Virus record (IMG/VR): IMGVR_UViG_3300042519_004024
Span: 62,001-126,000 of that record
Length of the DNA: 64,000 bases
Direction: 5' to 3' (one strand)
In this document: positions 7,804 through 20,207 of the stretch, piece after piece
Layout: every line of letters begins with the position of its first letter
Position numbering within the stretch: the stretch's first letter is position 1
Made by a program: the position numbers and the translations under genes
Notes under the pieces: model-generated
Told to the model about the DNA's origin: nothing
Databases searched by the model: none
What the model saw: only the letters and a program-made list of their open reading frames with translations

Positions 7804-8310
7804 TTATTTATTTTTTAATTCAAGTAAATATTGATAAAGTTCGTCTTCTTGTCCCGGTGAGTATCCAACATATGATTTAACAATATTACCATATACATCT
7901 AAAATGAAAGTGTGTGGTATATTATTTACCCCTAAAGCTCTTTTTAAATCACCATTTACATCCAACCAAACTTCATAATCCCAAGAACTTCCTTTAACGT
8001 ATGTCTCTACAGAATTTTTAGTTTTCTCATCATCTACTGAAACAGCAATTAGTGTTACACCGGTACTATCAACCCACTGAGAGTAAACATCATTAATTGA
8101 ATTTAATTCTTTTTTACACGGAGCACACCAAGTAGCCCAAAAACTAATAACAACCGGCCCTTCATACTTTAATTTAGCAGTATTTACCCCTTCCCCATCT
8201 AAAGTTTTTATATAAACTGTTGGTAGTTTTCTTAATGTGGTATCAATTTGTGTTGATTGCCCAAAAAATAAGAATGGAATTAAAAATAGTGTTATCAAAA
8301 AAGACTTCAT
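7804..8310 (-). CDS. TlpA/ResA-family thioredoxin-like disulfide reductase
   Basis: Signal peptide; SFWATWCAPCKKEL; NNIPHTFILD. Confidence 0.9.
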   Translation of the reverse strand: MKSFLITLFLIPFLFFGQSTQIDTTLRKLPTVYIKTLDGEGVNTAKLKYEGPVVISFWATWCAPCKKELNSINDVYSQWVDSTGVTLIAVSVDDEKTKNSVETYVKGSSWDYEVWLDVNGDLKRALGVNNIPHTFILDVYGNIVKSYVGYSPGQEDELYQYLLELKNK

Positions 8311-8388
8311 AATTTTGTTTTTTTATTATAATAAATACTCTTGAGGTTACAGAGTTAATTAAATATTGAGCACCTCTATCTCATTTTG

Positions 8389-8461
8389 TTGTCAGTAAAG
8401 GATTCGAACCAATGACACGTCCCTAAAAAGGGATTGCTCTAACCAACTGAGCTAACTGACA
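8389..8461 (-). ncRNA. Aberrant tRNA-Lys-like RNA (6-nt anticodon loop)
   Basis: Perfect acceptor TGTCAGT/ACTGACA, canonical D arm, loop TTTTTA, two T-T mismatches in T stem. Confidence 0.7.
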
Positions 8462-8499
8462 TACCTAATAATAAAACTTTAGTTTTACATTGTCAAGTG

Positions 8500-8573
8500 T
8501 GGTCCTTGTTGGGATCGAACCAACCACCCACAGATTATGAGTCTGTTGCTCTAACCGAATGAGCTAAAGGACC
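8500..8573 (-). tRNA. tRNA-Ile2(CAT), lysidine type (elongator Met less likely)
   Basis: ACAGA-CTCATAA-TCTGT; C4:G69 and C5:G68 match TilS determinants. Confidence 0.85.
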
Positions 8574-8579
8574 TATTTG

Positions 8580-8662
8580 ATGTCAGGGAGGGATTCGAAC
8601 CCACAATGAGCAACCATCTTTAACAGATGGATTCAGTACCACACTTCTTTACACTCCTGACA
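8580..8662 (-). ncRNA. tRNA-like RNA with disrupted D arm
   Basis: Acceptor TGTCAGG/CCTGACA; T arm GTGGG-TTCGAAT-CCCTC; central hairpin CCATC-TGTTAAA-GATGG. Confidence 0.65.
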
Positions 8663-8664
8663 AA

Positions 8665-8769
8665 CAACGACTCTTCAGCATTCTACTCCCCGCAAATACA
8701 TAAATGTAACACGAAATTGTATCTAATTTAACCCTACGTTGGCGGTACGGGTACTGAAGTTCATCGTTG
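8665..8769 (-). ncRNA. Structured ncRNA candidate between tRNA-Leu and a tRNA-like element
   Basis: Nested helices CAACGAT/GTCGTTG, CTTCAGTA/TGCTGAAG, CCCGTA/TGCGGG. Confidence 0.65.
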
Positions 8770-8854
8770 GTACTCGAAGAGGGACTCGAACCCTCACAAC
8801 CCACTGGTCAACAGAGCTTAAACCTGTCGTGTCTACCAATTCCACCATCCGAGC
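8768..8854 (-). tRNA. tRNA-Leu(TAA)
   Basis: Class II cloverleaf, ACAGG-TTTAAGC-TCTGT, encoded CCA. Confidence 0.93.
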
Positions 8855-8944
8855 ATTTTAAAGAGTTATTTTCTCTTTCTTACCATAAAGATAAACAAAA
8901 CAAATAATACAAATAATATTGGTGTCATAATTTTTTAATTTTTG

Positions 8945-9029
8945 TAGTCAGGACAGGAATCGAACCTGTACTAAACCTGGTATACACCATATTAAATTAG
9001 GAACGTGTTACCAATTACACCACCTGACT
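8945..9029 (-). ncRNA. tRNA-like RNA lacking a canonical anticodon arm
   Basis: Acceptor AGTCAGG/CCTGACT, D arm GTGT-AATTGGTA-ACAC, T arm ACAGG-TTCGATT-CCTGT; centre has TGGT-GTAT-ACCA hairpin. Confidence 0.75.
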
Positions 9030-9041
9030 ATTTTTATTGTG

Positions 9042-9113
9042 CGGTCCATCCGGGAATCGAACCCGAAGCATATCCGTGACAGGGATATATGTTAGCCGTT
9101 ACACCAATGGACC
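9042..9113 (-). tRNA. tRNA-Asp(GTC)
   Basis: TATCC-CTGTCAC-GGATA, G73. Confidence 0.95.
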
Positions 9114-9175
9114 AAAAAACCACATTACAAAACCATAAAGGTACAACTCCTGCGGTTGCGTTGTTCATCATATTG

Positions 9176-9247
9176 TAGTCCGTACGGGAATCGAACCCGT
9201 GACTCTGCCGTGAAAGGGCAGCGACTTAACCCCTTGTCGAACGGACC
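9176..9247 (-). tRNA. tRNA-Glu(TTC)
   Basis: CTGCC-CTTTCAC-GGCAG. Confidence 0.95.
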
Positions 9248-9263
9248 ATCTTATTTGGTATTA

Positions 9264-9295
9264 CAAAGATATGTAAACTGTTTCAATCTACCAAA
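9264..9295 (-). promoter_or_regulatory. Bacteroidota-type promoter for tRNA-Glu onward
   Basis: TTTG-N20-TATCTTTG. Confidence 0.8.
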
Positions 9296-9301
9296 TTTTT
9301 T

Positions 9302-9457
9302 TTACTTTTTTTTGTGGGACCCGCTCCCCACTCTAAACTTGTACTTCGTTCTATTAAGCGTTTTTTTCAGTTTTTTTAACCAATCAGTATTCGTGTTAGT
9401 TTTAACAAATTTAAATCTTCCTGATTCGCAAGTTCCTGATAAAACTTCTCTCATCAT
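9302..9457 (-). CDS. Putative 51-aa basic protein in tRNA array
   Basis: Hand translation MMREVLSGTCESGRFKFVKTNTNTDWLKKLKKTLNRTKYKFRVGSGSHKKK; fills a gap between tRNAs. Confidence 0.45.
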   Translation of the reverse strand: MMREVLSGTCESGRFKFVKTNTNTDWLKKLKKTLNRTKYKFRVGSGSHKKK

Positions 9458-9479
9458 TCATTTGTATTAATTGTTTATT

Positions 9480-9552
9480 TGGTGGACACTGTGGGAATCG
9501 AACCCATACGATCTGATTGCAAATCAGTCGACCTGCCGTCGGCATCAGGCCC
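9480..9552 (-). tRNA. tRNA-Ala(TGC), slightly atypical
   Basis: Loop TTTGCAA centred on TGC; G3:U70 and A73; encoded CCA; irregular acceptor/T junction. Confidence 0.8.
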
Positions 9553-9557
9553 ATTTG

Positions 9558-9629
9558 TGCGGGTAGAATGAATCGAACACTCATCTCCACATTGGAAGTG
9601 TGGAGTAATAACCATTATACGATACCCGC
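9558..9629 (-). tRNA. tRNA-Gly(TCC)
   Basis: CCACA-CTTCCAA-TGTGG. Confidence 0.93.
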
Positions 9630-9633
9630 AAAT

Positions 9634-9849
9634 TGTGACTACTCCGTTGGGATTTGTTTCGTCACTTTATCGTGAATGGGGTGATCAAACCCACTAACAT
9701 CACGGGTGTAAGTTTGTATGTCAAACTATCTCCACAAAACATTAGTTTTTATCTCTAAAACTAAAAAAACGACTTGACACCTTGTAACCCCCCTTTTAAG
9801 TGCGTGTTACCATCCTTTCTCAAGTAGAATATACTGCTTACACTCCCGT
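9634..9849 (-). ncRNA. Two-domain structured ncRNA candidate
   Basis: ACGGG(A)GTGTAAG/CTTACACCCGT closes 9702-9849; inner GTAAC/GTTAC and TAGTTTT/AAAACTA; second domain closed by GTGAT/GTCAC. Confidence 0.6.
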
Positions 9850-9929
9850 ACTGACGGTGGGATTCGAACCCACGTTTTAAACTTACCGCTACAGGCATAG
9901 ATGATATAAGCATCCACTGGTACATCAGC
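9849..9929 (-). ncRNA. tRNA-like RNA with rearranged D/anticodon region
   Basis: Acceptor GCTGATG/CGTCAGT; perfect T arm GTGGG-TTCGAAT-CCCAC; no normal D arm. Confidence 0.65.
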
Positions 9930-9935
9930 ATTTAG

Positions 9936-10007
9936 TTGCGGGGGCAGGATTCGAACCTGCGACCTACGGGTTATGAGCCCGCCGAGCTACCACTGCTCTA
10001 CCCCGCG
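9936..10007 (-). tRNA. tRNA-fMet(CAT)
   Basis: C1xA72 mismatch, GGG/CCC anticodon stem, loop CTCATAA. Confidence 0.95.
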
Positions 10008-10014
10008 ATATTTG

Positions 10015-10089
10015 TGGTGAGGGAATGGAATCGAACCATCGGCACAAGAGTTTTCTGTCTCCTTGCTCTACCTACTGAGCTACCGCACC
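10015..10089 (-). ncRNA. Aberrant tRNA-Phe-like RNA (8-nt anticodon loop)
   Basis: Phe-like body; stem AGGAG/CTCTT with loop ACAGAAAA; extra base and mismatch in acceptor stem. Confidence 0.7.
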
Positions 10090-10090
10090 A

Positions 10091-10275
10091 TAATTTGTGA
10101 TTTAGTAGTTGACTCACACTCTCGTTTCACCATCTTGAGCCAACAGGTTAATGTACTTTACGAGTTTCCCGTTTCTTACAACCACAATATTTTAAAATCA
10201 CTTTCGCCCCCTGTATAGACATACGTCAGATGCTTAAGGTCAGCCTTAACTATTAAGGGAGCCACCCGTGATTTT
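10091..10275 (-). ncRNA. Two structured RNA domains in the leader of tRNA array A
   Basis: AATCAC/GTGATT closing with TTAAGG-CTGA-CCTTAA; TTGTGGTT/AATCACAA closing with GTTGGCTCA/TGAGTCAAC. Confidence 0.55.
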
Positions 10276-10360
10276 TATTTTTAATATTTCAATGAACTTC
10301 TTCTTTCTTCACGGGAGTAGGACACCAACCTCTAACTTCCTACCCCCGTTCTCTGTCTTA

Positions 10361-10392
10361 CAAAGATATGTAATCTATTTTAATTTGCCAAA
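10361..10392 (-). promoter_or_regulatory. Bacteroidota-type promoter of tRNA array A
   Basis: TTTG-N20-TATCTTTG, followed by a 12-bp hairpin at about 10311-10349. Confidence 0.8.
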
Positions 10393-10400
10393 TCTTTTTT

Positions 10401-10748
10401 TTATTTTTTTATAAAGTACTCTTCAACTACGAATTTTCTTCCTTCTTTTTTTAGTACTCCAACAAAATCATCTTCGTGATGAATACCACAATAAAAACCT
10501 GAACCATCATGCCACAAACCACGTTTATTGTTTTTGTAAACGTTTTCACCATCAAACGTGATGTAATCAGGTTGGAATTCCTTTGTAAGGTTTGCCGCTC
10601 TAATCATTTCACGATTTTCAGAAGGGGTATAACTCCCACCAAAATCACTTTTGCAAAGAAACGTCGCCTTTCCAACCACAACTTTCTCTCCGTTGAGTGT
10701 TGCGTTTTTATCAAATTTTTTCTTGTAAGTGTAGATATAAACTCCCAT
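10401..10748 (-). CDS. Hypothetical early protein
   Basis: ATG 10748 preferred because promoter TTTG-N19-TATCTTTG (10765-10795) lies inside the longer ORF. Confidence 0.75.
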   Translation of the reverse strand: MGVYIYTYKKKFDKNATLNGEKVVVGKATFLCKSDFGGSYTPSENREMIRAANLTKEFQPDYITFDGENVYKNNKRGLWHDGSGFYCGIHHEDDFVGVLKKEGRKFVVEEYFIKK

Positions 10749-10833
10749 ATGTTTTTTATTTCTACAAAGATATGTAATCACTTTTGATTTGCAAAATCTT
10801 TTTTAAACTTTTTTTACCAATATGTCAAAGAAC

Positions 10834-10863
10834 AAAAAAACCCACCTCTTTTGGAGATGGGTT
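10834..10863 (-). terminator. Intrinsic terminator / possible attenuator 3:4 hairpin
   Basis: ACCCATCTC-CAAAA-GAGGTGGGT plus T-run. Confidence 0.8.
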
Positions 10864-10888
10864 TCAAAATTTATTATGTATTAAATTA

Positions 10889-10963
10889 TCATACCATCTC
10901 CTTATAGGAACGATCCTCAGCTATCACCAATCCGCCTAATAATATGATATGTAAATTTTTCAT
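10889..10963 (-). CDS. Putative 24-aa leader peptide
   Basis: Hand translation MKNLHIILLGGLVIAEDRSYKEMV; late motif at 10986-10992; 3' end complementary to terminator 5' arm. Confidence 0.55.
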   Translation of the reverse strand: MKNLHIILLGGLVIAEDRSYKEMV

Positions 10964-11022
10964 TTGCGTTTTTATTTGTTTTGTTATAAATATATGATAC
11001 TTTTTAAAAGTGTCAAGTTTTT

Positions 11023-11346
11023 TTAATATTTTCTTCTTGAGTATTTAAAATTTCCGTGTCTCTTTTTGTATGCGTCATAAAATGTTCTACCATACTTTTC
11101 GTCACCAAATAATCTTTTTTTAATGTCTTCAGGTATGTCTTCAAAATTTTCTACTTCACTATATGGATCATAATCAAATTCGTAATAACCAGTATCTTCT
11201 AAGTCCTTATCAAAATATGTGTGCTCACCTTCATCATCAACCCAATGATCAGTATCGCCAAACTTTGCTCTATACTTAGATTCTTTAATGACTTTATTAA
11301 CAATTCTAACTAAATCTGATTCTGTTAGTCTTATAATTTTTTTCAT
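11023..11346 (-). CDS. LTESDL-leader family protein
   Basis: MKKIIRLTESDLVRIVNKVIKES. Confidence 0.85.
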   Translation of the reverse strand: MKKIIRLTESDLVRIVNKVIKESKYRAKFGDTDHWVDDEGEHTYFDKDLEDTGYYEFDYDPYSEVENFEDIPEDIKKRLFGDEKYGRTFYDAYKKRHGNFKYSRRKY

Positions 11347-11355
11347 AATAATCTA

Positions 11356-11868
11356 TTAATATCCATGTTTTTTTGGGTACATTATATGTTCTAAATGAGA
11401 AGTATATTCAAAAGTTAAAACATCAAGTACGTCATTAATTCCATTTTTCATTTTTGAATCCTCTTCAAGTGAGTTATATTCATTTTCATAATAACTTATT
11501 AATTCTTCAAAAAGTTTTCCAATCATATTAATATTTGTTTTCCACAACGTCTTCCATTCTTCTTTTTCGTATTGTGAAAGTTCGTCATATTCAATTTCAT
11601 CATTAAATCTTTTTGATGGTCTTCTAGTGAATTTAGACATGTTTCTTTTTCTCCATAAATCATAATCGTGTTGAATGTCTCCATAACGTAAATAATTTCC
11701 TGGGATATTTTTTTCTATAAGGTAATTATTAAACAAATCTATTAACTCCGTTTTAAATTTTTCAATTTCTTCAGGTGTGATTACTTTATAAATTTCAGAT
11801 ATATTATTTTCTTTAATTACTCGTCTAACAATTCTCGCTAGATCGGATTCTGTAAGTCTATTTCTCAT
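11356..11868 (-). CDS. LTESDL-leader family protein
   Basis: MRNRLTESDLARIVRRVIKEN. Confidence 0.85.
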   Translation of the reverse strand: MRNRLTESDLARIVRRVIKENNISEIYKVITPEEIEKFKTELIDLFNNYLIEKNIPGNYLRYGDIQHDYDLWRKRNMSKFTRRPSKRFNDEIEYDELSQYEKEEWKTLWKTNINMIGKLFEELISYYENEYNSLEEDSKMKNGINDVLDVLTFEYTSHLEHIMYPKKHGY

Positions 11869-11882
11869 TTTTATATTTTTTA

Positions 11883-12497
11883 TTATGCATATTCTTCATC
11901 GTCAAAGTCCTCATACTCATCAAATGGGTCCTCACGCCTTTTTGTTATTATCGTCCCTTCACCATCTATTTTACCACCAGTCCCGAATACGTCTTTTGGT
12001 AATTTTCTATACTTTTCAGGTTTATAATCTTCAGGATATCTTTTTTTTTGTATAAAGTCATCCCAACCTTCACCTAATTCTTCATCTCTTCCTTTTGTTT
12101 TTGCAAATGCTTTTTTCAAATCATTAACTGAGTGTCCTCCAATCGCATCGTATGGTTCGTCCTCATCAACTTTATAGAAACCTTCTTTTTCCATTAAGTA
12201 TTCAATATCGTTAGGCAAATCACCATAACCTTCATCACGTAAAGCCATAACAATATCAAATTCACTCATCAAATTAAGGTCGTGTATATCATATTCACAT
12301 TCATTTTCAAGTATATCTCTTGCCTGTTCAATTAAATCTTGAAGTCTTTCCTCACCTCTATCGGTTTGTCCCCACTCTTCATCATCACTATAGTATGGAT
12401 CATACATACTTCTATCTTTATAGTCGTCGTTTTCTTTAATTACCCGTCTAACAATTCTTGCTAAATCTGATTCTGTTAGTCTTATTATTCTTTTCAT
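11883..12497 (-). CDS. LTESDL-leader family protein, acidic
   Basis: MKRIIRLTESDLARIVRRVIKEN. Confidence 0.85.
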   Translation of the reverse strand: MKRIIRLTESDLARIVRRVIKENDDYKDRSMYDPYYSDDEEWGQTDRGEERLQDLIEQARDILENECEYDIHDLNLMSEFDIVMALRDEGYGDLPNDIEYLMEKEGFYKVDEDEPYDAIGGHSVNDLKKAFAKTKGRDEELGEGWDDFIQKKRYPEDYKPEKYRKLPKDVFGTGGKIDGEGTIITKRREDPFDEYEDFDDEEYA

Positions 12498-12499
12498 TA

Positions 12500-13033
12500 T
12501 TATCTGTTGTTTCTACTTTTATCGGACTTTCCGTAATGGTGTCCTGATTGGTATTTATCATAACCTTTTCTTTTAAACCAAGCGGCGTCTCTAAGAGTAT
12601 TACTCGCTAAAGCATAAACGCCTAAAGCAGCAGCAATTCCCCCACTTATAAACATCGCTGCCGGAACAATTGCTAATGCCGCACCAACTGAACTATAGCC
12701 AATAATTTTATCAATAATACTTCTTATTTCATATTCATTATCACCCATTTCATTTTCATCCTCTTCCGTCAATACAGACTCCAAAGAATCTTTAACTATT
12801 GATTGTAAAGATTCAATACCGTTACTTTCTATAAAATCACGTAACATATCTTGCTCTTCAGGACTCAATTGTTCTGTAGCCTCTTTACTACTTTGTTCCA
12901 ATTCCATTTTTGAAAAATCGACATCCGATTCCATATCTTCAGATTGTGAAATCCATTCTTCTTCGTTTTCTTTAATCACTCGTCTAACAATTCTTGCTAG
13001 ATCAGATTCTGTAAGTCTTATAATTTTTTTCAT
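12500..13033 (-). CDS. LTESDL-leader family protein with hydrophobic hairpin
   Basis: MKKIIRLTESDLARIVRRVIKEN; hydrophobic SSVGAALAIVPAAMFISGGIAAALGVYALA. Confidence 0.85.
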   Translation of the reverse strand: MKKIIRLTESDLARIVRRVIKENEEEWISQSEDMESDVDFSKMELEQSSKEATEQLSPEEQDMLRDFIESNGIESLQSIVKDSLESVLTEEDENEMGDNEYEIRSIIDKIIGYSSVGAALAIVPAAMFISGGIAAALGVYALASNTLRDAAWFKRKGYDKYQSGHHYGKSDKSRNNR

Positions 13034-13063
13034 TATTTTTTTATTTATAAATACTTTGTTATT

Positions 13064-14020
13064 TTAAAAACCAAAGTTTAATCTTAAATCGTCTAATTTA
13101 ATTACCTCGGTAACTTCAACAAAATTATCTTCCATACCAACACTATCTCTTCTATCCTCCATTGTCATCTCATCATCTTCAATATATCTTACATGAATTT
13201 CAAGATTAAATGGAACAATTTCTTCATTTGATTCAATTTCATTAAAATCTTCCACTGAAAAATATTTACCTTCGTATTGACTGAACCCATCTCCAATCAT
13301 TATGTTGAAACTTTTTCTTATATTATACCTGTAATCGTCAGTTTCAACTTCTCCATTTCCATCACAATTACTACAAGTACTTGATCCATACCCATCACAC
13401 CATCCACATTCTTCATCTCCAGCACCTTCACATGATGGACATTCAAAATTACCTGTCCCACCACAATCACTACATCTATCTTCACCGGTTCCATCACAAT
13501 GAACACACTCTACCTCCACTTCAACCTCATCACCTTCATCATCTTCTTCAGTATCGGTTTCACTTCCTCTACCATCACAATAACGACATTCTTCATTACC
13601 TGATCCATCACAAGTATCACAATCTATAGTTGTTTCTCCATCACAACTACGACATTCTCGTCTACCTGACCCATCACAGTGTTCACATTGTTCATCACCT
13701 GAACCGTAACAGTAATCACATTCATTTTTAATTACTTCAGTGTCTTCATACAATTCAATAACTGCAACGTATAGGTTCATTATTATTCCTTCCATTGCAA
13801 CAGGATCCATTTTTCTATTTAAAATAAAATATGTCATAACACATACTTTAATTCTTTCTTGTGTGGAATTGACTTTTGATAATAATAATTCGGCTAAATG
13901 ATCACTTTTTATGATATTTATTATTTTTGAAATACCGATAAATACGTTTCCGTATTCGGTTTTCATTAAATTAGCTAAATTATTAGCTATTGAGTATAAT
14001 TTTTTAAATTCAGGTGACAT
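13064..14020 (-). CDS. Protein with ten CxxCxGxG zinc-finger repeats
   Basis: Ten motifs at 11-aa spacing, 5+5 around an acidic loop; no J domain. Confidence 0.85.
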   Translation of the reverse strand: MSPEFKKLYSIANNLANLMKTEYGNVFIGISKIINIIKSDHLAELLLSKVNSTQERIKVCVMTYFILNRKMDPVAMEGIIMNLYVAVIELYEDTEVIKNECDYCYGSGDEQCEHCDGSGRRECRSCDGETTIDCDTCDGSGNEECRYCDGRGSETDTEEDDEGDEVEVEVECVHCDGTGEDRCSDCGGTGNFECPSCEGAGDEECGWCDGYGSSTCSNCDGNGEVETDDYRYNIRKSFNIMIGDGFSQYEGKYFSVEDFNEIESNEEIVPFNLEIHVRYIEDDEMTMEDRRDSVGMEDNFVEVTEVIKLDDLRLNFGF

Positions 14021-14054
14021 ATAGTATAAATATTAAAATACTATAAAATGTACA

Positions 14055-14372
14055 CTATATTAATTTAATAAGGTCCGTTGGGTAAACTTTTTTTAGTTGG
14101 ATGTCGTATGTTTTTATAAACCAATCTAAAAGTAGGCTATCGGTTTCATAATCAAAAAATGACTTTAATTCATTATATAATTTTAAAGGACAATTTAAAT
14201 CGTCTCCGTAACCAATATGATTAAAATAAAAAAACACAAATTGTTTTTTGTTTTTTGTGTCAACTAAATAAAAGGCAATGAAATCTCCATCACATTTGTG
14301 AAGTAGTTTGAGTTTATTTAACTCAGGTAAAAACATATTAATATAATCTGAAAAAGACTTCTCTAAACTCAT
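14055..14372 (-). CDS. Hypothetical protein
   Basis: ATG 14372 overlaps upstream TGA (ATGA). Confidence 0.65.
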   Translation of the reverse strand: MSLEKSFSDYINMFLPELNKLKLLHKCDGDFIAFYLVDTKNKKQFVFFYFNHIGYGDDLNCPLKLYNELKSFFDYETDSLLLDWFIKTYDIQLKKVYPTDLIKLI

Positions 14373-14674
14373 AACTCTTGTACTTGAATCATAATCCAAT
14401 CAACTTCACCTTCAGTTAGGTTACCAAGTACGTCTTCAGTTATATGAGTATTGTATGTAATTTCCCATTCATTTTCATTTCCATGCAGCACGGCAACTTC
14501 CCATTCATTTTCATCTGAAGTATATGACGCATACCTAAACCCTTTTTCAGATATAGGACTTGGTATTTTAAACCTTACAACAGATAATCCATATCCATTA
14601 GGAAAAAATATTAATCCGTGTTGCCCATCAAATGTTGGGTGTGGTTTAAATACAATATCCTTAAATGATTTCAT
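14369..14674 (-). CDS. Hypothetical phage protein
   Basis: ORF track; TAATG coupling to upstream small ORF. Confidence 0.75.
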   Translation of the reverse strand: MKSFKDIVFKPHPTFDGQHGLIFFPNGYGLSVVRFKIPSPISEKGFRYASYTSDENEWEVAVLHGNENEWEITYNTHITEDVLGNLTEGEVDWIMIQVQEL

Positions 14675-14826
14675 TACGCGAAAGTTTTTTTATGTTTTGT
14701 TTTTCTAGTATAAAGGTTTTTTGGTTTTTCAACACGAGCAACAAATCTACCATCAAAAAATCCCGCATCTAATTGATCTTTTCTGATTTGAGTTCTTTTT
14801 ACTTTATGTTGATCGTACGTCTTCAT
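14674..14826 (-). CDS. ArfA-like ribosome-rescue factor candidate, 50 aa
   Basis: Hand translation MKTYDQHKVKRTQIRKDQLDAGFFDGRFVARVEKPKNLYTRKTKHKKTFA; promoter 14842-14872; TAATG coupling. Not in ORF track. Confidence 0.55.
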   Translation of the reverse strand: MKTYDQHKVKRTQIRKDQLDAGFFDGRFVARVEKPKNLYTRKTKHKKTFA

Positions 14827-14841
14827 CTCATTTATTTTTTA

Positions 14842-14872
14842 CAAAGATATAAATATTTTATTATATACCAAA
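14842..14872 (-). promoter_or_regulatory. Bacteroidota-type promoter
   Basis: TTTG-N19-TATCTTTG. Confidence 0.8.
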
Positions 14873-14879
14873 TTTTTTG

Positions 14880-14953
14880 TACCTCCGGCAGGACTCGAAC
14901 CTGCAAAATTCACTTTCTAAGAGTGACGTGTATACCTATTCCACCACGAAGGC
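14880..14953 (-). tRNA. tRNA-Leu(TAG) with short variable loop
   Basis: TCACT-CTTAGAA-AGTGA, A73; variable region only ATTTT. Confidence 0.88.
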
Positions 14954-14964
14954 ATTTATTTATG

Positions 14965-15036
14965 AGCTCAGGGAGGGATTCGAACCCACATACTACGGTT
15001 TTGCAGACCGAGACTTTACCAATCAGACACCTGAGC
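14965..15036 (-). tRNA. tRNA-Cys(GCA)
   Basis: TCGGT-CTGCAAA-ACCGT, U73. Confidence 0.9.
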
Positions 15037-15038
15037 AA

Positions 15039-15494
15039 TTAACGGCAGTGATGGTCTGCCGCTCTTGTTGCAATTTGATTGTCAGGTTTAATATTTGCTT
15101 TATAACCTAACGACGTTGCCCACCCAACAACGGGTTGTACAAGTTTTGAACTAAAGTGTTTTTCTTCACAGTTATAATCCAAATCTATTTCAACCTTAAC
15201 TTTTACTTTTTGAGTTAACCATTCGGCAACCTCGATTGAATAATCAGCTTCATTCCAAAGACGTGTCCATTTGTCTTTTATTTTTTTCACTTTTTGTTTG
15301 TGTAGGATGTAGTGAACACCTCTGTTTCCGTATCTGTATGCTATCACTGTAACATATACGGTACTTCTTCTATGGTTTTGTGAATCCGTTCCAATATGTA
15401 TTTCAGCCCATGGACATTCCTTTAAAACATCTAAGGTGTGTTTTACCACATCAGGGATTGCTTCACCATTAATTGTTCTAAATACTCTGTTCAT
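15039..15494 (-). CDS. RNase H-like YkuK-family protein
   Basis: IHIGTDSQ, RLWNEAD, EIDLDYN, ATRAAD acidic motifs. Confidence 0.85.
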   Translation of the reverse strand: MNRVFRTINGEAIPDVVKHTLDVLKECPWAEIHIGTDSQNHRRSTVYVTVIAYRYGNRGVHYILHKQKVKKIKDKWTRLWNEADYSIEVAEWLTQKVKVKVEIDLDYNCEEKHFSSKLVQPVVGWATSLGYKANIKPDNQIATRAADHHCR

Positions 15495-15505
15495 TATTTC
15501 TACTT

Positions 15506-15643
15506 TTATTTACTTATCAAAAAATAAGTAATAAGAATTTGAGCAATCACGGCAATTATTCTTGCTATTGTTCTTGCTAATGTCATTCGATTTTTCCAAC
15601 CTTCCAACCTTTCTTCAAATGTTGGTTTAACATTTTCATCCAT
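15506..15643 (-). CDS. Small membrane protein, 45 aa
   Basis: MDENVKPTFEERLEGWKNRMTLARTIARIIAVIAQILITYFLISK; start moved to ATG 15643 to avoid tRNA-Phe. Confidence 0.6.
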   Translation of the reverse strand: MDENVKPTFEERLEGWKNRMTLARTIARIIAVIAQILITYFLISK

Positions 15644-15656
15644 ACTATTTTTTTTG

Positions 15657-15732
15657 TGGAACCATAGGGAGTCGAACCCTAACCTCTGGATTTTCAGTCC
15701 AGCGTGACACACCACACTTACACCATAGTTCC
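15657..15732 (-). tRNA. tRNA-Phe(GAA)
   Basis: CTGGA-CTGAAAA-TCCAG. Confidence 0.92.
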
Positions 15733-16227
15733 TTATTTAACTTCAAATGCAAATTTAATCACACGTTTCTTTTTTACCGCATCATCCCAATTACCAATAA
15801 CAACACCATCTTTAATTGTGAATGCGTGTCTTGAAACAAGGATGAAGAATGTCCCAACAGGATTTTGTTTTGCAAAAGTACCAACAGTCATTTCTCGTTT
15901 AGTTACAACACCCTTAGTTTTAACTTCGTACTTTAAACTGTACATCCCCATAGTACTTTTAGTACCCATACATTTAACTTTCTTGTAGTTAATCTGTCTT
16001 CTATCTTCGGCGATTTGTTTCATTTTTAAAACAGTACCATAAGTCCCCTCACGATCTTTACGTCCAAAGTTCTCTTTAACATATTTGTGAGCGTAGTCAT
16101 ATGAAACCCCAAATGAAGATGCAAATGCTCTAACAACACAATCATTCTTCTCTCCTCTTGCGATAGGTGATTCAGCATACCCCTTAATCGCTTCTTTCGT
16201 CGTACAATATGGTAATCCTTCTTTCAT
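15733..16227 (-). CDS. Conserved phage protein, possible Cys-His peptidase-like fold
   Basis: EKNDCVVRAFA and SRHAFTIKDG; ATG 16227. Confidence 0.65.
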   Translation of the reverse strand: MKEGLPYCTTKEAIKGYAESPIARGEKNDCVVRAFASSFGVSYDYAHKYVKENFGRKDREGTYGTVLKMKQIAEDRRQINYKKVKCMGTKSTMGMYSLKYEVKTKGVVTKREMTVGTFAKQNPVGTFFILVSRHAFTIKDGVVIGNWDDAVKKKRVIKFAFEVK

Positions 16228-16274
16228 ACTGTAAAGATACAAAAACTTTTTTAATTGGCAAAATTAAAAATTAG

Positions 16275-16345
16275 CGCGCCCCCAAGGTTTCGAACCCTGA
16301 CCGATGGGTTTGGAATCCATCATGCTACCATTACACCAGAGACGC
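16275..16345 (-). tRNA. tRNA-Trp(CCA)
   Basis: Loop TTCCAAA, G73. Confidence 0.9.
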
Positions 16346-16382
16346 AAGTTGTCCGACCTAGCTCGGAACCGACATCGGATTG

Positions 16383-16455
16383 TACCCCCTCAGAGATTCG
16401 AACTCCGACCTGACACCTTAGAAGAGTGTTGTACTTCCAATTATACGAAAGGGGC
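16383..16455 (-). tRNA. tRNA-Arg(TCT)
   Basis: ACACT-CTTCTAA-GGTGT. Confidence 0.92.
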
Positions 16456-16460
16456 AAATA

Positions 16461-16631
16461 AAAGATGATGAATGACTTTATCAGGAATCCCGCTACTTCT
16501 ATCAAAGCTTCACACACCATTAGAGAGTTGGGTTGTTACATCAATACAATTAAGATTGAATACCTATCCTTAGTTTGTACCCTTGCGACACGTCTCTCCA
16601 CGCTTATCATTCTACGCTTCTTATCATCTTT
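16461..16631 (-). ncRNA. 171-nt rod-like ncRNA candidate (6S-like shape)
   Basis: AAAGATGAT/ATCATCTTT, GAATGAT/GTCATTC, AAGC/GCTT, TGGAGAG/CTCTCTA; bounded by two tRNA-Arg genes. Confidence 0.65.
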
Positions 16632-16633
16632 TG

Positions 16634-16706
16634 TACCTTCGGCGAGATTCAAACTCACATCTTGCGGGTCGTAACCGCAGGTTCTATTCTATTTAACTAC
16701 GAAGGT
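16634..16706 (-). tRNA. tRNA-Arg(ACG), variant D and T loops
   Basis: TGCGG-TTACGAC-CCGCA; D loop lacks GG; T loop TTTGAAT. Confidence 0.85.
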
Positions 16707-16710
16707 ATAA

Positions 16711-16802
16711 ATAGTTCTGGTCAACCACTCGCCACCCACCTCAGGGAATAAAGGGAATACCACCCTATACTTTGAGCCTAAGCCTTGTCCGTTGTGAACT
16801 AT
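16711..16802 (-). ncRNA. 92-nt structured ncRNA candidate
   Basis: ATAGTTC/GAACTAT closing stem, CAAC/GTTG, CTCA/TGAG, AGGG/CCCT; between His and Arg tRNAs. Confidence 0.5.
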
Positions 16803-16805
16803 TTG

Positions 16806-16879
16806 TGTGTATGATGGGGGTCGAACCCATGACCTCTTGAACCACAATCAAGCACTCTACCAACTGAGCTACATACACC
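16806..16879 (-). tRNA. tRNA-His(GTG)
   Basis: CTTGA-TTGTGGT-TCAAG; encoded G-1 opposite A73. Confidence 0.92.
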
Positions 16880-16884
16880 ATATT

Positions 16885-16954
16885 GTCCCGTGTAATGGTA
16901 TCGAACCACTCTAAAGTCGGATATGAGCCAACTTTGATCCCTGATCACACGGGA
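16885..16954 (-). tRNA. Non-canonical CAT tRNA with 8-bp acceptor and 8-bp anticodon stems (elongator Met candidate)
   Basis: TCCCGTGT/ACACGGGA; mini D arm ATC-AGG-GAT; AAAGTTGG-CTCATAT-CCGACTTT; T arm AGTGG-TTCGATA-CCATT. Confidence 0.7.
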
Positions 16955-16958
16955 GTTG

Positions 16959-17047
16959 AGGAAAACAGTGGTAACGATCCACAATCGGTTTCTCACCGAT
17001 CACATTGTTTAGCAAACAAGTCCCGTCGCCTTCAGGGATTACTTTCC
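16959..17047 (-). tRNA. tRNA-Ser(GCT)
   Basis: Loop TTGCTAA; variable arm ATCGGT/ACCGAT; T loop ATCGTTA; U73. Confidence 0.85.
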
Positions 17048-17106
17048 ATAGAGTGTGGTAGGACTGCAGTTCCTTGGGGATCCCACACTATTTATTCCCC
17101 TTTTTG

Positions 17107-17179
17107 TGTTCACGACGGGTTACGATCCCATTACCTCCGACGTATCAGATCGGCGCTCTACCAATTGAGCTACGTGAAC
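17107..17179 (-). tRNA. tRNA-Ile(GAT)
   Basis: CCGAT-CTGATAC-GTCGG; T loop ATCGTAA. Confidence 0.92.
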
Positions 17180-17185
17180 TTATCG

Positions 17186-17258
17186 CGGACAAGGAAGGGT
17201 ACGATCCTACAACCTATCGGTTAACAGCCGATTGCTCTACCAATTGAGCTACTTGTCC
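17186..17258 (-). tRNA. tRNA-Asn(GTT)
   Basis: ATCGG-CTGTTAA-CCGAT, G73; T loop ATCGTAC. Confidence 0.92.
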
Positions 17259-17262
17259 ATTG

Positions 17263-17348
17263 TGGTGGGAGAGGAGGGACTCGAACCCCCAAGGTCTTTC
17301 GACGACAGATTTACAGTCTGCTGAGCCAACCAATTGCTCAACTCTCCC
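17263..17348 (-). tRNA. tRNA-Tyr(GTA)
   Basis: GCAGA-CTGTAAA-TCTGT, variable arm, encoded CCA. Confidence 0.95.
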
Positions 17349-17354
17349 AGTTTA

Positions 17355-17477
17355 GGAAAGGGGAAGATGGTTCTGTGGACATCCCCTTTTATGATTGGCG
17401 TTACTATGACAGTTAAAACTCCGACATAACCACGACTACTGACACGTTAACGTTATATCATTCCCCAATCAACCTTT
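17355..17477 (-). ncRNA. Structured ncRNA candidate between tRNA-Val and tRNA-Tyr
   Basis: TGATTGG/CCAATCA domain then AAAGGGGATG/CATCTTCCCCTTT hairpin. Confidence 0.5.
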
Positions 17478-17478
17478 G

Positions 17479-17552
17479 TACACCCTACAGGGATCGAACC
17501 TGTGACCTGTTGTATGTAAAACAACCGCTACTACCAGCTGAGCTAAAGGTGC
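17479..17552 (-). tRNA. tRNA-Val(TAC)
   Basis: GTTGT-TTTACAT-ACAAC. Confidence 0.92.
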
Positions 17553-17554
17553 GT

Positions 17555-17770
17555 TTATGATGTTATCATTTTAATACTTTCAATTGTGGTAGAGTACATT
17601 CCTTGTTCAATGTAAGGTTTACTATCTTTTAATAGTTTCAAAACAATTTCTGTTGCCTCGTTTTCGGTTTTACCTTGTTTAACCAATCTTACGATTGCTT
17701 TTTCACATTCTTCACCAACCTTAACCATTCCACTTGGAAGTCCTTTTTTAATCTTCTCTACTTTTTTCAT
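17555..17770 (-). CDS. Hypothetical early protein
   Basis: 71 aa directly after promoter TTTG-N19-TATCTTTG (17775-17805). Confidence 0.7.
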   Translation of the reverse strand: MKKVEKIKKGLPSGMVKVGEECEKAIVRLVKQGKTENEATEIVLKLLKDSKPYIEQGMYSTTIESIKMITS

Positions 17771-17813
17771 AGTACAAAGATAATACTTTTTTTTAATCTA
17801 CCAAATTTTTTTG

Positions 17814-17888
17814 TGATCCCGGTGAGGCTCGAACTCACGACCCCTCCATTAAAAGTGGAGTGCTCTAAACCAACTGAGCTACGAGATC
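17814..17888 (-). tRNA. tRNA-Lys(TTT)
   Basis: CTCCA-CTTTTAA-TGGAG. Confidence 0.95.
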
Positions 17889-17948
17889 TTCTGTTTGTCA
17901 TTCTTGTCACTTTCCATGTTACTTGTTTTTAATTGTTTATTTATTTAG

Positions 17949-18022
17949 TCTAAGTGGCAGGGATCGAACCTGCGGCCTGATGCTCCCAAAGCACCCGCTC
18001 TTCCAAACTGAGCTACACCTAG
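17949..18022 (-). tRNA. tRNA-Pro(TGG)
   Basis: GGTGC-TTTGGGA-GCATC; C1:G72. Confidence 0.95.
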
Positions 18023-18028
18023 TTATTG

Positions 18029-18117
18029 TGGAGGAAGAAGTAGGTGTCGATCCCAATACCCGCAAAGGTACCGCCCGTTTTCAAGACGGGGTCACAAGCC
18101 GTTGTGATTCATCTTCC
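18029..18117 (-). tRNA. tRNA-Ser(TGA)
   Basis: CCCGT-CTTGAAA-ACGGG; variable arm; T loop ATCGACA; U73; encoded CCA. Confidence 0.87.
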
Positions 18118-18123
18118 TTATTG

Positions 18124-18195
18124 TTGTTCCCCAAGGGTTCGAACCTCGATTCCATGGACCAAAACCATGTGTCCTGCCGATTAGACGAGGGAACA
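18124..18195 (-). tRNA. tRNA-Gln(TTG)
   Basis: CATGG-TTTTGGT-CCATG. Confidence 0.93.
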
Positions 18196-18238
18196 TTAAT
18201 GAAGCCAATATGTCAAAGAACTTTTTCTTTTTTGTTTG

Positions 18239-18311
18239 AGGTTCCTATCAGGTTCGAACTGATGACTCCGGGTTACAAAGCCGGGATATTACCAAACTAT
18301 ACTAAGGAACC
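18239..18311 (-). tRNA. tRNA-Thr(TGT)
   Basis: Loop TTTGTAA, C31xC39 mismatch, U73. Confidence 0.88.
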
Positions 18312-18324
18312 AAATTTTTGGGTA

Positions 18325-18357: not shown

Positions 18358-18388
18358 ATATTTCTTTTATATTTTTAGTTAATCTCTA

Positions 18389-20201: not shown

Positions 20202-20207
20202 ATATTA

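Follow-up and report, generated by a model that had tools for sequence, protein, structure and literature searches.

The window examined here (64,000 nt, positions 62,001 to 126,000 of IMG/VR record IMGVR_UViG_3300042519_004024) probably belongs to an AT-rich phage of ~214 kb with a Bacteroidota host, and contains two tRNA operons (arrays A and B) in which tRNA genes alternate with non-canonical tRNAs and with structured segments that are not tRNAs, hereafter called modules (Table 1). Every tRNA call is on the minus strand, leftward transcription is predicted for the operons, and the GC content is 30% for the genome and 37-48% for the modules. The initial annotation had proposed at least six structured segments within about 0-7 nt of a tRNA or tRNA-like element, and the six that it listed all proved to be real, on the minus strand and with linkers of that length. 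However, one of them (10091-10275), just upstream of TL3, consists of two independent modules, S3a and S3b, which occur apart in other phages; thus, the six segments correspond to seven families. Five elements had been missed: the leader hairpin A0, the Ser(GCU) tRNA and the Ala(UGC)-, Ser(UGA)- and Met-like tRNAs.

On the basis of a regular-expression scan, 15 minus-strand and 3 plus-strand copies of the promoter motif TTTG-N-TAnnTTTG could be identified, compared with a mean of 4.2 on both strands after shuffling; in addition to the copy listed in Table 1, copies were found at 9264-9295, 17775-17805 and 14842-14872. A motif was present within 200 nt upstream of A0 in 100%, of S3b in 82% and of S3a in 67% of cases, but in only 0-9% for S1, S2, S4, S5 and S6 and in 5% for tRNAs. 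The median distance between A0 and the upstream motif was 11 nt, A0 starting ~11 nt past the -7 box. S3b never had a tRNA directly upstream and always had a tRNA or tRNA-like element 0-9 nt downstream. A0, S3a and S3b would act as promoter-adjacent leader elements.

Table 1. Features of the two tRNA operons and their surroundings (window coordinates)
Feature	Position	Strand	Description
S1	8664-8767	-	~90-105-nt pseudoknotted RNA, between tRNA-Leu(UAA) and TL1
S2	9634-9848	-	215-nt multi-helix structured RNA, between TL2 and tRNA-Gly
S3b	10095-10187	-	~90-nt pseudoknotted leader RNA with invariant core; covariation
S3a	10194-10275	-	~82-nt hairpin-type RNA with closing stem, leader module; covariation
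A0	10276-10349	-	5' leader module; covarying hairpin 10311-10349, then conserved tail
S4	16456-16632	-	135-184-nt RNA with crossing helices, between two tRNA-Arg genes
S5	16707-16804	-	two-strand-core motif, between tRNA-His and tRNA-Arg
S6	17355-17477	-	~123-nt RNA, between tRNA-Val and tRNA-Tyr
Glu-Asp spacer	9114-9174	-	conserved 61-nt spacer between tRNA-Glu and tRNA-Asp; 98% identity in L020-L024
TL1	8581-8662	-	tRNA-like; normal acceptor/T arm, covarying anticodon stem, aberrant D region
TL-Ala	9480-9552	-	Ala(UGC)-like tRNA; G3:U70, encoded CCA; ARAGORN at 75% threshold, Ala(tgc)
TL2	9849-9931	-	Ile(UAU)-like tRNA; no normal D arm, extended anticodon stem
TL3	10015-10089	-	Phe(GAA)-like tRNA; 8-nt anticodon loop; Rfam tRNA 39.6 bits
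Met tRNA	16885-16955	-	Met(CAU)-like; ARAGORN at 85% threshold, missed at default
Ser tRNA	16958-17047	-	Ser(GCU); ARAGORN at 85% threshold, missed at default
SB0	18029-18117	-	Ser(UGA)-like tRNA; ARAGORN at 85% threshold, Ser(tga); beyond the range of the initial annotation
Promoter motif	10361-10392	-	TTTG-N-TAnnTTTG, Bacteroidota-type; regex scan; predicted driver of array A
GOLLD RNA	23407-23815	-	Rfam RF02032; 329 bits, E = 1.5e-93, full model length

Structured modules between the tRNAs

At least seven families of non-tRNA structured RNAs (~80-215 nt) could be distinguished, all of which were found again in IMG/VR, in dozens of related phage contigs. At the same loci, nucleotide identity of the modules was 80-99%, compared with 56-70% amino acid identity for the protein embedded in the array. 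None of the seven modules was called a tRNA by ARAGORN at 75% thresholds, and the Rfam search that had been suggested earlier gave no family match for them at E <= 1 (Rfam 15). The signal exceeds what chance would give, but single-sequence folding was unremarkable (MFE z-scores from -0.04 to -2.5 across segments) and does not show it; the case for structure rests on conservation and covariation among homologues. The proposed covariation check found the spacers to be conserved and covarying. Covariation exceeded shuffled or slid controls for S3b, S2, S4 and S1, and compensatory changes included the pseudoknots of three modules (S1, S3b and S4), although some of these counts represent few evolutionary events because many homologues are closely related. 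In every non-tRNA module, the 5' and 3' ends pair with each other in a terminal helix. On the tRNA strand the modules contain many G-U pairs, which would become A-C mismatches on the other; thus, the tRNA strand appears to be the transcribed one.

Among the pseudoknotted families, S1 (54 unique sequences) was 95.7% paired, with compensatory changes in 15 of 25 pairs compared with at most 6 in slid controls, and its pseudoknot helices were 98-99% paired. For S3b, whose core was present in 82 IMG/VR stretches, 93.9% of cells were paired (99.6% in the pseudoknot helix) and both sides had changed in 14 of 28 pairs (55 unique sequences). S4 was 98.4% paired, and the 9 of its 42 pairs that had changed on both sides (24 unique sequences) include the pseudoknot helix crossing P2. 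Similarly, S2 was 92.4% paired with both sides changed in 18 of 44 pairs (20 unique sequences), including one helix in which all six pairs covaried and pairing was 100%. S6 has a closing stem, inner hairpins that vary and a 3' hairpin whose loop is invariant; its stems covary among 23-26 unique sequences. The leader module A0 had four compensatory pairs among 22-28 unique homologues, whereas S3a showed a covarying closing stem and inner hairpins in 10; in phage contigs L020-L024, S3a occurs without S3b and adjoins the 61-nt Glu-Asp spacer. S5 is built of an invariant 20-nt 5' strand and an invariant ~23-nt 3' strand, together with a variable closing stem and a variable hairpin of 10 to >100 nt. 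It was widespread (107 IMG/VR stretches, 66 unique sequences), and its closing stem, found in 40 distinct versions, was 94.4% paired compared with 55% for shuffled partners. One distant S5 copy adjoins a DUF2828/DUF7788 protein, an association that is not consistent.

In 82-96% of distinct contexts, S2, S4 and S6 had flanking tRNAs at a distance of 0-8 nt. For S2, the upstream tRNA lay at 0 nt in 23 of 24 contexts and the downstream one at 2-6 nt in 21 of 24; the corresponding tRNAs of S4 were present in 39 and 40 of 47 contexts, and a tRNA or a second S6 lay within 10 nt of S6 upstream in 23 and downstream in 27 of 28. About half of the S5 copies abut tRNAs, and approximately one third of them, together with a sizeable share of the S1 copies, stand alone, with no tRNA detected within 150-500 nt. 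Thus, a flanking tRNA is not obligatory for the S5 and S1 families. Position -1 of the tRNAs was U in 19 of 30 cases, which is the residue preferred there by bacterial RNase P.

Non-canonical tRNAs

Most tRNAs here encode N73-C-A-A-A rather than CCA. Three further elements (TL1, TL2 and TL3) had been described as tRNAs with broken anticodon arms directly abutting structured segments. All three are present and adjoin the segments, yet none has a broken anticodon arm: each forms a covarying stem, and what is abnormal is the D-arm region in TL1 and TL2 and the loop size in TL3. TL1, called by ARAGORN only at the 85% threshold, has a 5-bp anticodon stem and a 7-nt loop (NGUURNN), with five compensatory pairs among 13 unique sequences. 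TL2 combines its intact stem with an invariant CUUAUAU loop (six compensatory pairs, 18 unique sequences), and its slot directly 5' of S2 is occupied by a canonical Ile(tat) in relatives. For TL3, ARAGORN at the 85% threshold gave a 4-base anticodon; the stem covaried among 22 unique homologues, and relatives have a canonical Phe-GAA.

The elements missed before show a similar pattern. Compensatory changes replace the whole anticodon stem of TL-Ala (six unique sequences), whose syntenic slot after Gly holds a canonical Ala(tgc) in relatives and whose G3:U70 pair is the AlaRS identity element. SB0 has a 6-bp D stem with a tetraloop, its T loop is altered and CCA is encoded; compensatory changes occur in 15 of 29 pairs (19 unique sequences), and its slot in relatives holds a canonical Ser(tga). 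Copies of the Ser(GCU) tRNA that were 99% identical and called tRNA-Ser(gct) were found in L003, L004, L033, L034 and L036. The non-canonical elements are the only Ala and Ser tRNAs of the window. Because the aberrant tRNAs are kept in 6-22 distinct sequences with compensatory changes, they are not decayed genes, in agreement with the initial annotation. However, its reading of them as processing signals is another matter: the acceptor and T-arm half suffices as a signal for RNase P and RNase Z, and these elements keep more than that half, so a bare signal fits less well. We regard functional tRNAs or tRNA decoys as their most likely identity; for the Ile-UAU-, Phe-GAA-, Ala-UGC- and Ser-UGA-like forms, a role as working non-canonical tRNAs is more likely than one as mere processing signals.

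Proposed expression and alternative explanations

We consider it rather probable that the arrays are polycistronic operons whose tRNAs, odd-shaped tRNAs and at least seven structured RNAs are released by tRNA processing. The two operons would be transcribed leftward from Bacteroidota-type promoters, with canonical tRNAs, non-canonical tRNAs and non-tRNA structured RNAs arranged head to tail. The primary transcript would begin with A0, S3a and S3b as its 5' leader, and S1, S2, S4, S5 and S6 would be internal, promoterless modules. RNase P, in cutting the 5' end of the tRNA that follows, would set the 3' end of an internal module; the module's 5' end would result from 3' processing of the tRNA before it, immediately behind the discriminator, so that modules would be freed as discrete stable small RNAs with no need for signals of their own. 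Known substrates of RNase P include multimeric phage pre-tRNAs with <5-nt spacers and also RNAs other than tRNAs; the processing of multimeric T4 pre-tRNAs is described in the same paper (PMC11143913). Since the internal spacers almost never have a promoter motif nearby and are tRNA-bracketed in most contexts, a polycistronic cassette with tRNA-punctuated release is the simplest reading. The initial annotation had likewise proposed small-RNA expression cassettes; polycistronic expression agrees with the covarying spacers and the layout of promoters and tRNAs, whereas release by RNase P and a 3' enzyme, like co-transcription and accumulation of the modules, is predicted from the sequence. The internal modules might work in trans by attaching to a factor, of the host or of the phage, that takes part in translation, RNA metabolism or defence; this role is a guess, given that neither a binding partner nor target complementarity nor a catalytic signature was found for them. 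The leader modules may have a cis role, stabilising the 5' end or preventing termination of a long untranslated transcript.

Operons that are not translated are open to attack by Rho, and leader RNAs serve against termination in rRNA operons and in some phages. It is possible, though somewhat doubtful, that A0, S3a and S3b remain unreleased as a cis-regulatory leader providing anti-termination or 5'-end protection for the ~2-kb untranslated operon. Their strictly promoter-proximal location, and the tRNAs found downstream but never upstream of S3b, would fit such a role; on the other hand, they resemble no Rfam anti-termination RNA, and the RNase P cut at the first tRNA would also free S3b, the two roles being compatible. 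It appears unlikely that the aberrant tRNA-like elements are mere RNase P/RNase Z signals or decaying pseudogenes. Such a view could explain why the acceptor and T arms are their best-conserved parts, why TL1, TL2, TL-Ala and SB0 escape the Rfam tRNA model even at E <= 1, and why there are odd loops and few homologues for t8388 and t8944, but not the covarying anticodon stems with invariant loops, the G3:U70 and encoded CCA of the Ala-like element, the synteny with canonical Ile-UAU, Ala-UGC, Ser-UGA and Phe-GAA, or the dependence of the window on these elements for Ala and Ser.

Three other explanations concern the spacers themselves. Quite unlikely, in our view, is a purely cis function as folding insulators or processing enhancers for RNase P/RNase Z that are degraded after cleavage: the terminal helix would isolate each module from its neighbours, and the modules are placed exactly between tRNAs, yet a stable hairpin would do for this purpose, whereas invariant internal-loop strands of 13-24 nt and pseudoknots are kept, family-specific cores are constant across very different phages, and S5 and S1 also occur without a nearby tRNA. 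That some modules are self-cleaving ribozymes independent of RNase P/RNase Z is very unlikely. S5, in which variable helices enclose two invariant strands, would be the strongest candidate; it also occurs in many genomic contexts with and without tRNAs, and the variable stems around near-invariant junction nucleotides in S5 and S3b are typical of small ribozymes; however, no Rfam ribozyme family was matched at E <= 1, no cleavage site could be deduced, and both cuts are already supplied by flanking tRNAs. The shuffled module order among phages, near-identity in distant phages (for example, 98% for S3a plus the Glu-Asp spacer) and tandem S6 copies might suggest mobile DNA or recombination remnants conserved through recent horizontal spread rather than RNA selection. 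This is extremely improbable, considering that helices and pseudoknots are preserved by compensatory substitutions, only one strand tolerates G-U pairs, and neither repeats nor transposase genes flank the modules.

Comparison with known systems

The nearest precedents for the proposed tRNA-punctuated cassettes would be the T4 species 1/2 RNAs and the GOLLD/ROOL RNAs near phage tRNA islands. The stable species 1/2 RNAs (rnaC and rnaD) are non-tRNA RNAs inside the T4 tRNA gene cluster, co-transcribed with the tRNAs and matured by the tRNA-processing machinery; to our knowledge, their function has not been established. The likeness as described lies in non-tRNA RNAs among phage tRNA genes, whereas the present set comprises at least seven families, three of them pseudoknotted, in many uncultured phages with a different host phylum and with non-canonical tRNAs intermixed. 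GOLLD and ROOL are structured phage and prophage RNAs of unknown function that are often found beside tRNA islands (PMC12286853), and one GOLLD RNA is encoded on the tRNA strand ~6 kb from array B. However, the spacers here match neither model, are shorter (80-215 nt, compared with 400-800 nt) and occupy the exact gaps between tRNAs, not a position beside the array. As in mitochondrial tRNA punctuation and MALAT1-mascRNA, flanking tRNA or tRNA-like folds would supply RNase P/RNase Z cuts; those systems are eukaryotic or organellar and release mRNAs, rRNAs or a lncRNA 3' end, whereas the predicted products here, given the presumed cleavage, would be small structured RNAs of a bacterial virus.

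A survey of IMG/VR, the same data source, reported 8,495 covarying candidates, including tRNA-like ones (Fremin et al., 2023; PMC10690425). The portion of that report covered by a term search contains no description of a tRNA-punctuated arrangement, and some of the seven motifs may already be listed, unnamed, among its candidates. YrlA, the bacterial Y RNA-like family (RF02553), also occurs in phage tRNA arrays and resembles the present case in that structured ncRNAs and tRNA mimicry are encoded among tRNAs, but only weak matches were obtained (23-25 bits compared with a gathering score of 69), over tRNA or tRNA-like parts. Neither a Ro/TROVE gene nor a reverse transcriptase was found among the 41 window ORFs scanned (nearly all of at least 100 aa). 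The latter accompanies the UG27 arrays of Bacteroidota and Bacillota phages, which are modular, gain and lose units, and repeat one ~150-nt family beside the reverse transcriptase and two accessory genes (bioRxiv 10.64898/2026.09.22.753630). What the two cases share is a modular array of structured phage ncRNAs; in contrast with UG27, each family here is single-copy in the window and interleaved with tRNAs.

Conserved and covarying RNA folds between tRNAs

The window has a GC content of ~30% and carries the majority of its genes on the minus strand. ARAGORN identified 24 and Rfam 25 tRNAs in it, every one on the minus strand, and these are arranged in two arrays (array A, 8388-10089; array B, 14879-18311) with a single further tRNA at 20127. 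The six segments that the initial annotation had described as abutting tRNAs or tRNA-like elements were all confirmed by reading the minus strand, with linkers of 0-7 nt (see the table). Each of the modules that they contain is present in one copy in the window, and the GC content of the segments (37-48%) is above that of the genome. Their minimum free energy z-scores against dinucleotide shuffles ranged from -0.04 to -2.5, weak for most, and were not used as evidence; structure was therefore tested on homologues instead.

Structured modules, tRNA-like elements and associated features of the window; pairing statistics refer to alignments of distinct homologous sequences
Feature	Position	Strand	Upstream	Downstream	Distinct sequences	Cells paired	Pairs changed on both sides	Remarks
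S1	8664-8767	minus	tRNA-Leu(UAA)	TL1	54	95.7%	15/25	H-type pseudoknot
S2	9634-9848	minus	TL2	tRNA-Gly	20	92.4%	18/44	at least 9 helices, one covarying at 6/6 pairs
S3 (S3a+S3b)	10091-10275	minus	promoter and A0	TL3
S3a	10194-10275	minus
S3b	10095-10187	minus			55	93.9%	14/28
A0 (leader module)	10276-10349	minus
S4	16456-16632	minus	tRNA-Arg	tRNA-Arg	24	98.4%	9/42
S5	16707-16804	minus	tRNA-His	tRNA-Arg
S6	17355-17477	minus	tRNA-Val	tRNA-Tyr
TL1	8581-8662	minus						tRNA-like
TL2	9849-9931	minus						tRNA-like
TL3	10015-10089	minus						tRNA-like
TL-Ala	9480-9552	minus						Ala-UGC-like
SB0	18029-18117	minus						Ser-UGA-like
Ser-GCU and Met-like tRNAs	16885-17047	minus						missed at default thresholds
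RNaseH-like protein (PF04308)	15039-15494	minus						151 aa; inside array B; conserved in relatives
169-aa protein	15733-16242	minus						inside array B; conserved in relatives; invariant Asp-Cys and His residues
GOLLD RNA (RF02032)	23407-23815	minus						329 bits, full-length; same strand as tRNA arrays

Homologous loci were gathered with the 169-aa protein gene embedded in array B, which retrieved 36 related IMG/VR loci (56-99% amino-acid identity). The spacers were 80-99% identical at the nucleotide level where this protein was only 56-70% identical, and their order was shuffled. S3a and S3b are separated in five of these loci (L020-L024), and S3 was therefore treated as two modules. Searching IMG/VR for the patterns of conserved cores yielded further copies (82 stretches for S3b, 58 for S4, 107 for S5 and 81 for S1), and nhmmer recovered 63 distinct homologues of S1, 26 of S6 and 10 of S3a among all the loci collected. 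The S3b core had no match in 185,579 cellular species genomes; the S5 core had 10 matches in the same set versus ~17 expected by chance, two of them genuine and both on contigs of metagenome-assembled genomes. Given this near-absence of S3b and S5 from cellular genomes, the families look phage-specific.

The initial annotation had described the spacers as non-tRNA structured RNAs, and the alignments bear this out: they are conserved, and covariation was observed among the homologues of S1 to S6. Covariation scores of S3b, S2 and S4 exceeded those of 500 out of 500 shuffles, and slid controls were far lower in every case, including S1 (at most six pairs changed on both sides). In S3b, an outer stem is accompanied by a helix that does not vary, by a 3-bp helix in which C:G and U:A switch perfectly, and by a 9-bp pseudoknot helix that is 99.6% paired. 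In S4, one helix crosses another, with an invariant loop-to-strand pairing. The closing stem of S5, represented by 40 different sequences, was 94.4% paired versus 55% with shuffled partners. Inside this stem lie two invariant strands, of 20 nt and ~23 nt, separated by a hairpin whose size varies between 3 bp with a tetraloop and more than 100 nt. Closing and inner stems covary in both S6 and S3a. G-U pairs are frequent in the modules when read on the tRNA strand, which indicates that this strand is the transcribed one; the folds are strand-specific. In all, the analysis adds seven or more RNA families that are supported by covariation and absent from Rfam 15; three of these are pseudoknotted, and one (S5) occurs in more than 100 viral contigs from many environments. 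The possibility that the spacers harbor small ORFs was rejected, as substitutions sit at paired positions and show no codon pattern. The sole conserved mini-ORF among the spacers (8866-8928, minus strand; 20 codons) would encode a hydrophobic peptide with a basic tail; the AT-rich gap that holds it, with a Leu-like tRNA on one side and tRNA-Leu(UAA) on the other, is 81-92% conserved in 16 related loci.

Promoters, leader and internal modules

A promoter motif (TTTG, 17-23 nt, TAnnTTTG), which we take to be of the Bacteroidota type, was found in 15 minus-strand and 3 plus-strand copies, compared with 4.2 in shuffles with both strands taken together; copies are located at 10392, 9295, 17805 and 14872. 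The presence of a SprB-repeat protein and a phage sigma-70-family factor in the window is consistent with a Bacteroidota host. The window is nearly identical in sequence to IMG/VR contig 3300042519_004024 (213.9 kb). No close relative of the window was found among 50,697 GenBank phage records, and megablast of array A against the same records gave a single, tRNA-sized match, which points to the lack of a cultured relative. The minus strand also carries genes for a GAF-PAS histidine kinase with response regulator (3537-6116), the sigma-70-family factor (46525-47340), a full DnaJ (36806-37798) and an AhpC/TSA peroxiredoxin (7804-8310).

In most distinct genomic contexts, three of the modules are exactly packed between tRNAs. 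S2 directly follows a tRNA (0 nt) in 23 of 24 contexts, and in 21 of 24 another tRNA begins 2-6 nt after it; S4 has an upstream tRNA in 39/47 and a downstream tRNA in 40/47; and S6 is preceded by a tRNA or a second S6 copy in 23/28 and followed by one in 27/28. Thus, tRNA-adjoining positions on the same strand with minimal spacers account for 82-96% of the contexts of S2, S4 and S6. S1 and S5 adjoin tRNAs in only ~40-50% of contexts, and about one-third of their copies stand alone. Tandem S6 pairs were seen in three loci (L167, L175 and L192).

The promoter layout separates the modules into two groups. Within the 200 nt preceding the module, a full promoter motif is present for 100% of A0 copies (median distance 11 nt), 82% of S3b and 67% of S3a, compared with 2% for S1, 0% for S2, 9% for S4, 0% for S5, 4% for S6 and 5% for tRNAs. 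On the basis of these promoter positions, A0, S3a and S3b are predicted to be leader elements of the primary transcript, and S1, S2, S4, S5 and S6, mostly without a promoter upstream, must presumably be internal and co-transcribed with their tRNA neighbors. The polycistronic cassette suggested by the initial annotation is thus retained for these five modules, which have almost no promoter of their own in silico; the promoter-proximal A0, S3a and S3b are assigned to the leader of its transcript. S3b had no upstream tRNA in any context, being preceded by A0, S3a or a promoter, and the next element was either a tRNA, Phe-GAA being the commonest, or a tRNA-like element. In many relatives, the element after S3b is a Leu-like type II tRNA-like element with an anticodon region expanded to ~13 nt, missed by default ARAGORN (for example, at approximately L063:1289-1400, L004:4532-4645 and L021:11147-11260).

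Several minor features accompany this layout. The minus-strand sequence GTTC(A/T)TTGA(A/C)AT occurs after the A0 hairpin (~10283-10297) and between tRNA-Thr and tRNA-Gln (18210-18225), as well as right before S3b at many loci of other phages. A strong hairpin that resembles an intrinsic terminator and has a U run (18325-18354, minus strand) is located directly upstream of tRNA-Thr, the first tRNA of array B; no matching promoter motif was found between the two, and the promoter of the first array-B sub-array was not found.

The tRNA ends suggest how the modules might be released. Most tRNA genes in the window end in N73-C-A-A-A rather than CCA, which is encoded only in Tyr, Leu-UAA, SB0 and TL-Ala; position -1 is U in 19 of 30 tRNAs. 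The closing stem of the next module begins directly after the C of N73-C, the A run often forming its first strand. RNase P would cut 5' of each tRNA and 3' processing would follow each discriminator, the two cuts releasing the internal modules as discrete RNAs, and the leader modules would form the 5' end of the transcript. RNase P is known to process multimeric phage pre-tRNAs with spacers of <5 nt, as well as non-tRNA substrates (PMC11143913). A concrete biogenesis route, excision by tRNA-processing enzymes, can therefore be proposed, and it distinguishes leader from internal modules.

Non-canonical tRNAs and tRNA-like elements

Five tRNA-like elements (TL1, TL2, TL3, TL-Ala and SB0) have acceptor and T arms, covarying anticodon stems and aberrant D regions. 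The anticodon loop is 7 nt in all except TL3, in which it is 8 nt. Only TL3 reached the Rfam tRNA threshold, and the other four were called only by relaxed ARAGORN. TL1, TL2 and TL3 had been described as having broken anticodon arms, which proved incorrect: the stems are present and covary, and the irregularities lie in the D regions and in the 8-nt loop of TL3. TL2, represented by 18 distinct sequences, combines an invariant CUUAUAU loop with a covarying extended stem and stands just ahead of S2, where relatives have a canonical tRNA-Ile(UAU). The 22 sequences of TL3 show a relative of Phe-GAA whose 8-nt loop is conserved, and TL1 (13 sequences) has a covarying anticodon stem, an NGUURNN loop and extra sequence inserted in front of a mini D hairpin. 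TL-Ala possesses G3:U70 and an encoded CCA, its anticodon stem has been wholly replaced by compensatory changes, and its slot is that of tRNA-Ala in relatives. SB0 forms a cloverleaf with a 6-bp D stem and a tetraloop, has compensatory changes at 15 of 29 pairs, and occupies the slot of tRNA-Ser(UGA) in relatives.

The suggestion that some defective tRNAs are processing signals rather than decayed genes stands in part. Considering their covarying anticodon stems, conserved loops and canonical syntenic slots, the non-canonical elements appear not to be decayed, and the same features make a role as mere cleavage signals unlikely. Default ARAGORN misses the Ser-UGA-like, Ala-UGC-like, Ser-GCU and Met-like tRNAs, as does Rfam; with the non-canonical elements, the tRNA set of the window covers all 20 amino acids, and without them Ala and Ser are absent from it. 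Standard tRNA finders thus probably undercount phage tRNA sets, here missing Ala and Ser. These conserved non-canonical tRNAs also bear on the suggestion that evasion of tRNA-targeting defences drives the evolution of phage tRNAs (PMC10264068). For two further minus-strand tRNAs, the anticodon called has only 2 bases: a Lys-like one whose loop is 6 nt (8388-8461), and a type II one that resembles Leu-UAA and whose anticodon stem is poor (8944-9029); with 3-5 distinct homologues each, they may be decaying or specialized.

Relationship to known RNAs and possible roles

No Rfam family matched any module at gathering or E ≤ 1 (4,227 families). A reading as degenerate tRNAs, which we accepted for SB0, TL-Ala and the Ser-GCU and Met-like tRNAs, was ruled out for S1-S6: none of S1, S2, S3a, S3b, S4, S5 and S6 gave an RF00005 match at E ≤ 1 or an ARAGORN call at the 85% or 75% threshold, and their covariation-supported folds are not cloverleaves. 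Weak Rfam matches (YrlA, tmRNA, Thr_leader and C0465) were rejected as positioned over tRNA arms or a terminator hairpin; for YrlA (RF02553), the best scores were 25.5 and 23 bits over tRNA and tRNA-like sequence versus a gathering score of 69. A Y RNA identity was considered for S5, a stand-alone copy of which lies ~100 nt upstream of a DUF2828/DUF7788 protein gene (L166:11746-13092), and was dropped, as the other stand-alone copies checked precede unrelated proteins (YqaJ recombinase, AAA proteins and an uncharacterised family of ~470 aa); no Ro60/TROVE (rsr) gene was found by Pfam among the 41 window ORFs scanned. Over short stretches, S3b stem ends may resemble Cas13b repeats, an S3a strand may resemble boxA, and S5 may resemble the helix of Y RNA that binds Ro; these leads were set aside.

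No self-cleaving ribozyme (hammerhead, twister, twister-sister, pistol, hatchet, HDV-like or hairpin) was matched in Rfam at E ≤ 1 in 8000-24500. A riboswitch layout was not found either: a tRNA, and not an ORF, begins 0-8 nt after the internal modules, and S3b is succeeded by a tRNA or tRNA-like element, without a terminator or ribosome-binding site. The UG27 arrays repeat a single ncRNA family and depend on a reverse transcriptase (bioRxiv 10.64898/2026.09.22.753630); they are tandem units beside the UG27 reverse transcriptase and accessory genes, whereas the modules here are single-copy in the window, and Pfam revealed no reverse transcriptase or RNA-repair gene among the 41 ORFs scanned.

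RNAs without known function have been recognised in phage tRNA islands for 50 years, from the T4 species 1 and 2 to the later GOLLD and ROOL. The T4 species, non-tRNA RNAs of a phage tRNA cluster, are among the closest precedents, together with tRNA punctuation in organelles and MALAT1; like them, the modules here adjoin tRNAs on the same strand with minimal spacers, and the internal ones have almost no promoter of their own in an in silico motif scan. GOLLD and ROOL occur near phage tRNA islands (PMC12286853), and neither matched the spacers at E ≤ 1, the single GOLLD match being the copy listed in the table. ORFs annotated over 23720-24166 probably coincide in part with the 5' domain of this GOLLD RNA and would be spurious. 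A 2023 survey of IMG/VR predicted 8,495 anonymous structured-RNA candidates (PMC10690425), and some of the seven families may be among them; the families, and the way in which leader modules, internal modules and non-canonical tRNAs are combined, seem novel within an already known kind.

Neither target complementarity nor a consistent partner gene was found for the modules. Our favored guess is that the internal modules are trans-acting binders of host or phage machinery, and that A0 and S3b act in cis, either protecting the 5' end or countering termination. A wider picture, which we regard as rather unlikely, is a modular RNA toolkit made through the tRNA-processing pathway: several new compact pseudoknotted classes, of which one or more (S5 and S3b being the most plausible) would act as a new ribozyme or bind tightly to central host machinery such as the ribosome, RNase P, RNA polymerase or a nuclease of a defence system, together with a near-complete, shape-shifted tRNA set that would still decode and escape host tRNA-targeting defences. 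Small tractable modules beside GOLLD offer a way into the function of tRNA-island RNAs. The two proteins embedded in array B gave no functional clue. The 169-aa protein had no Pfam or PDB match; its Asp-Cys and His residues look like a papain- or C39-type catalytic pair.
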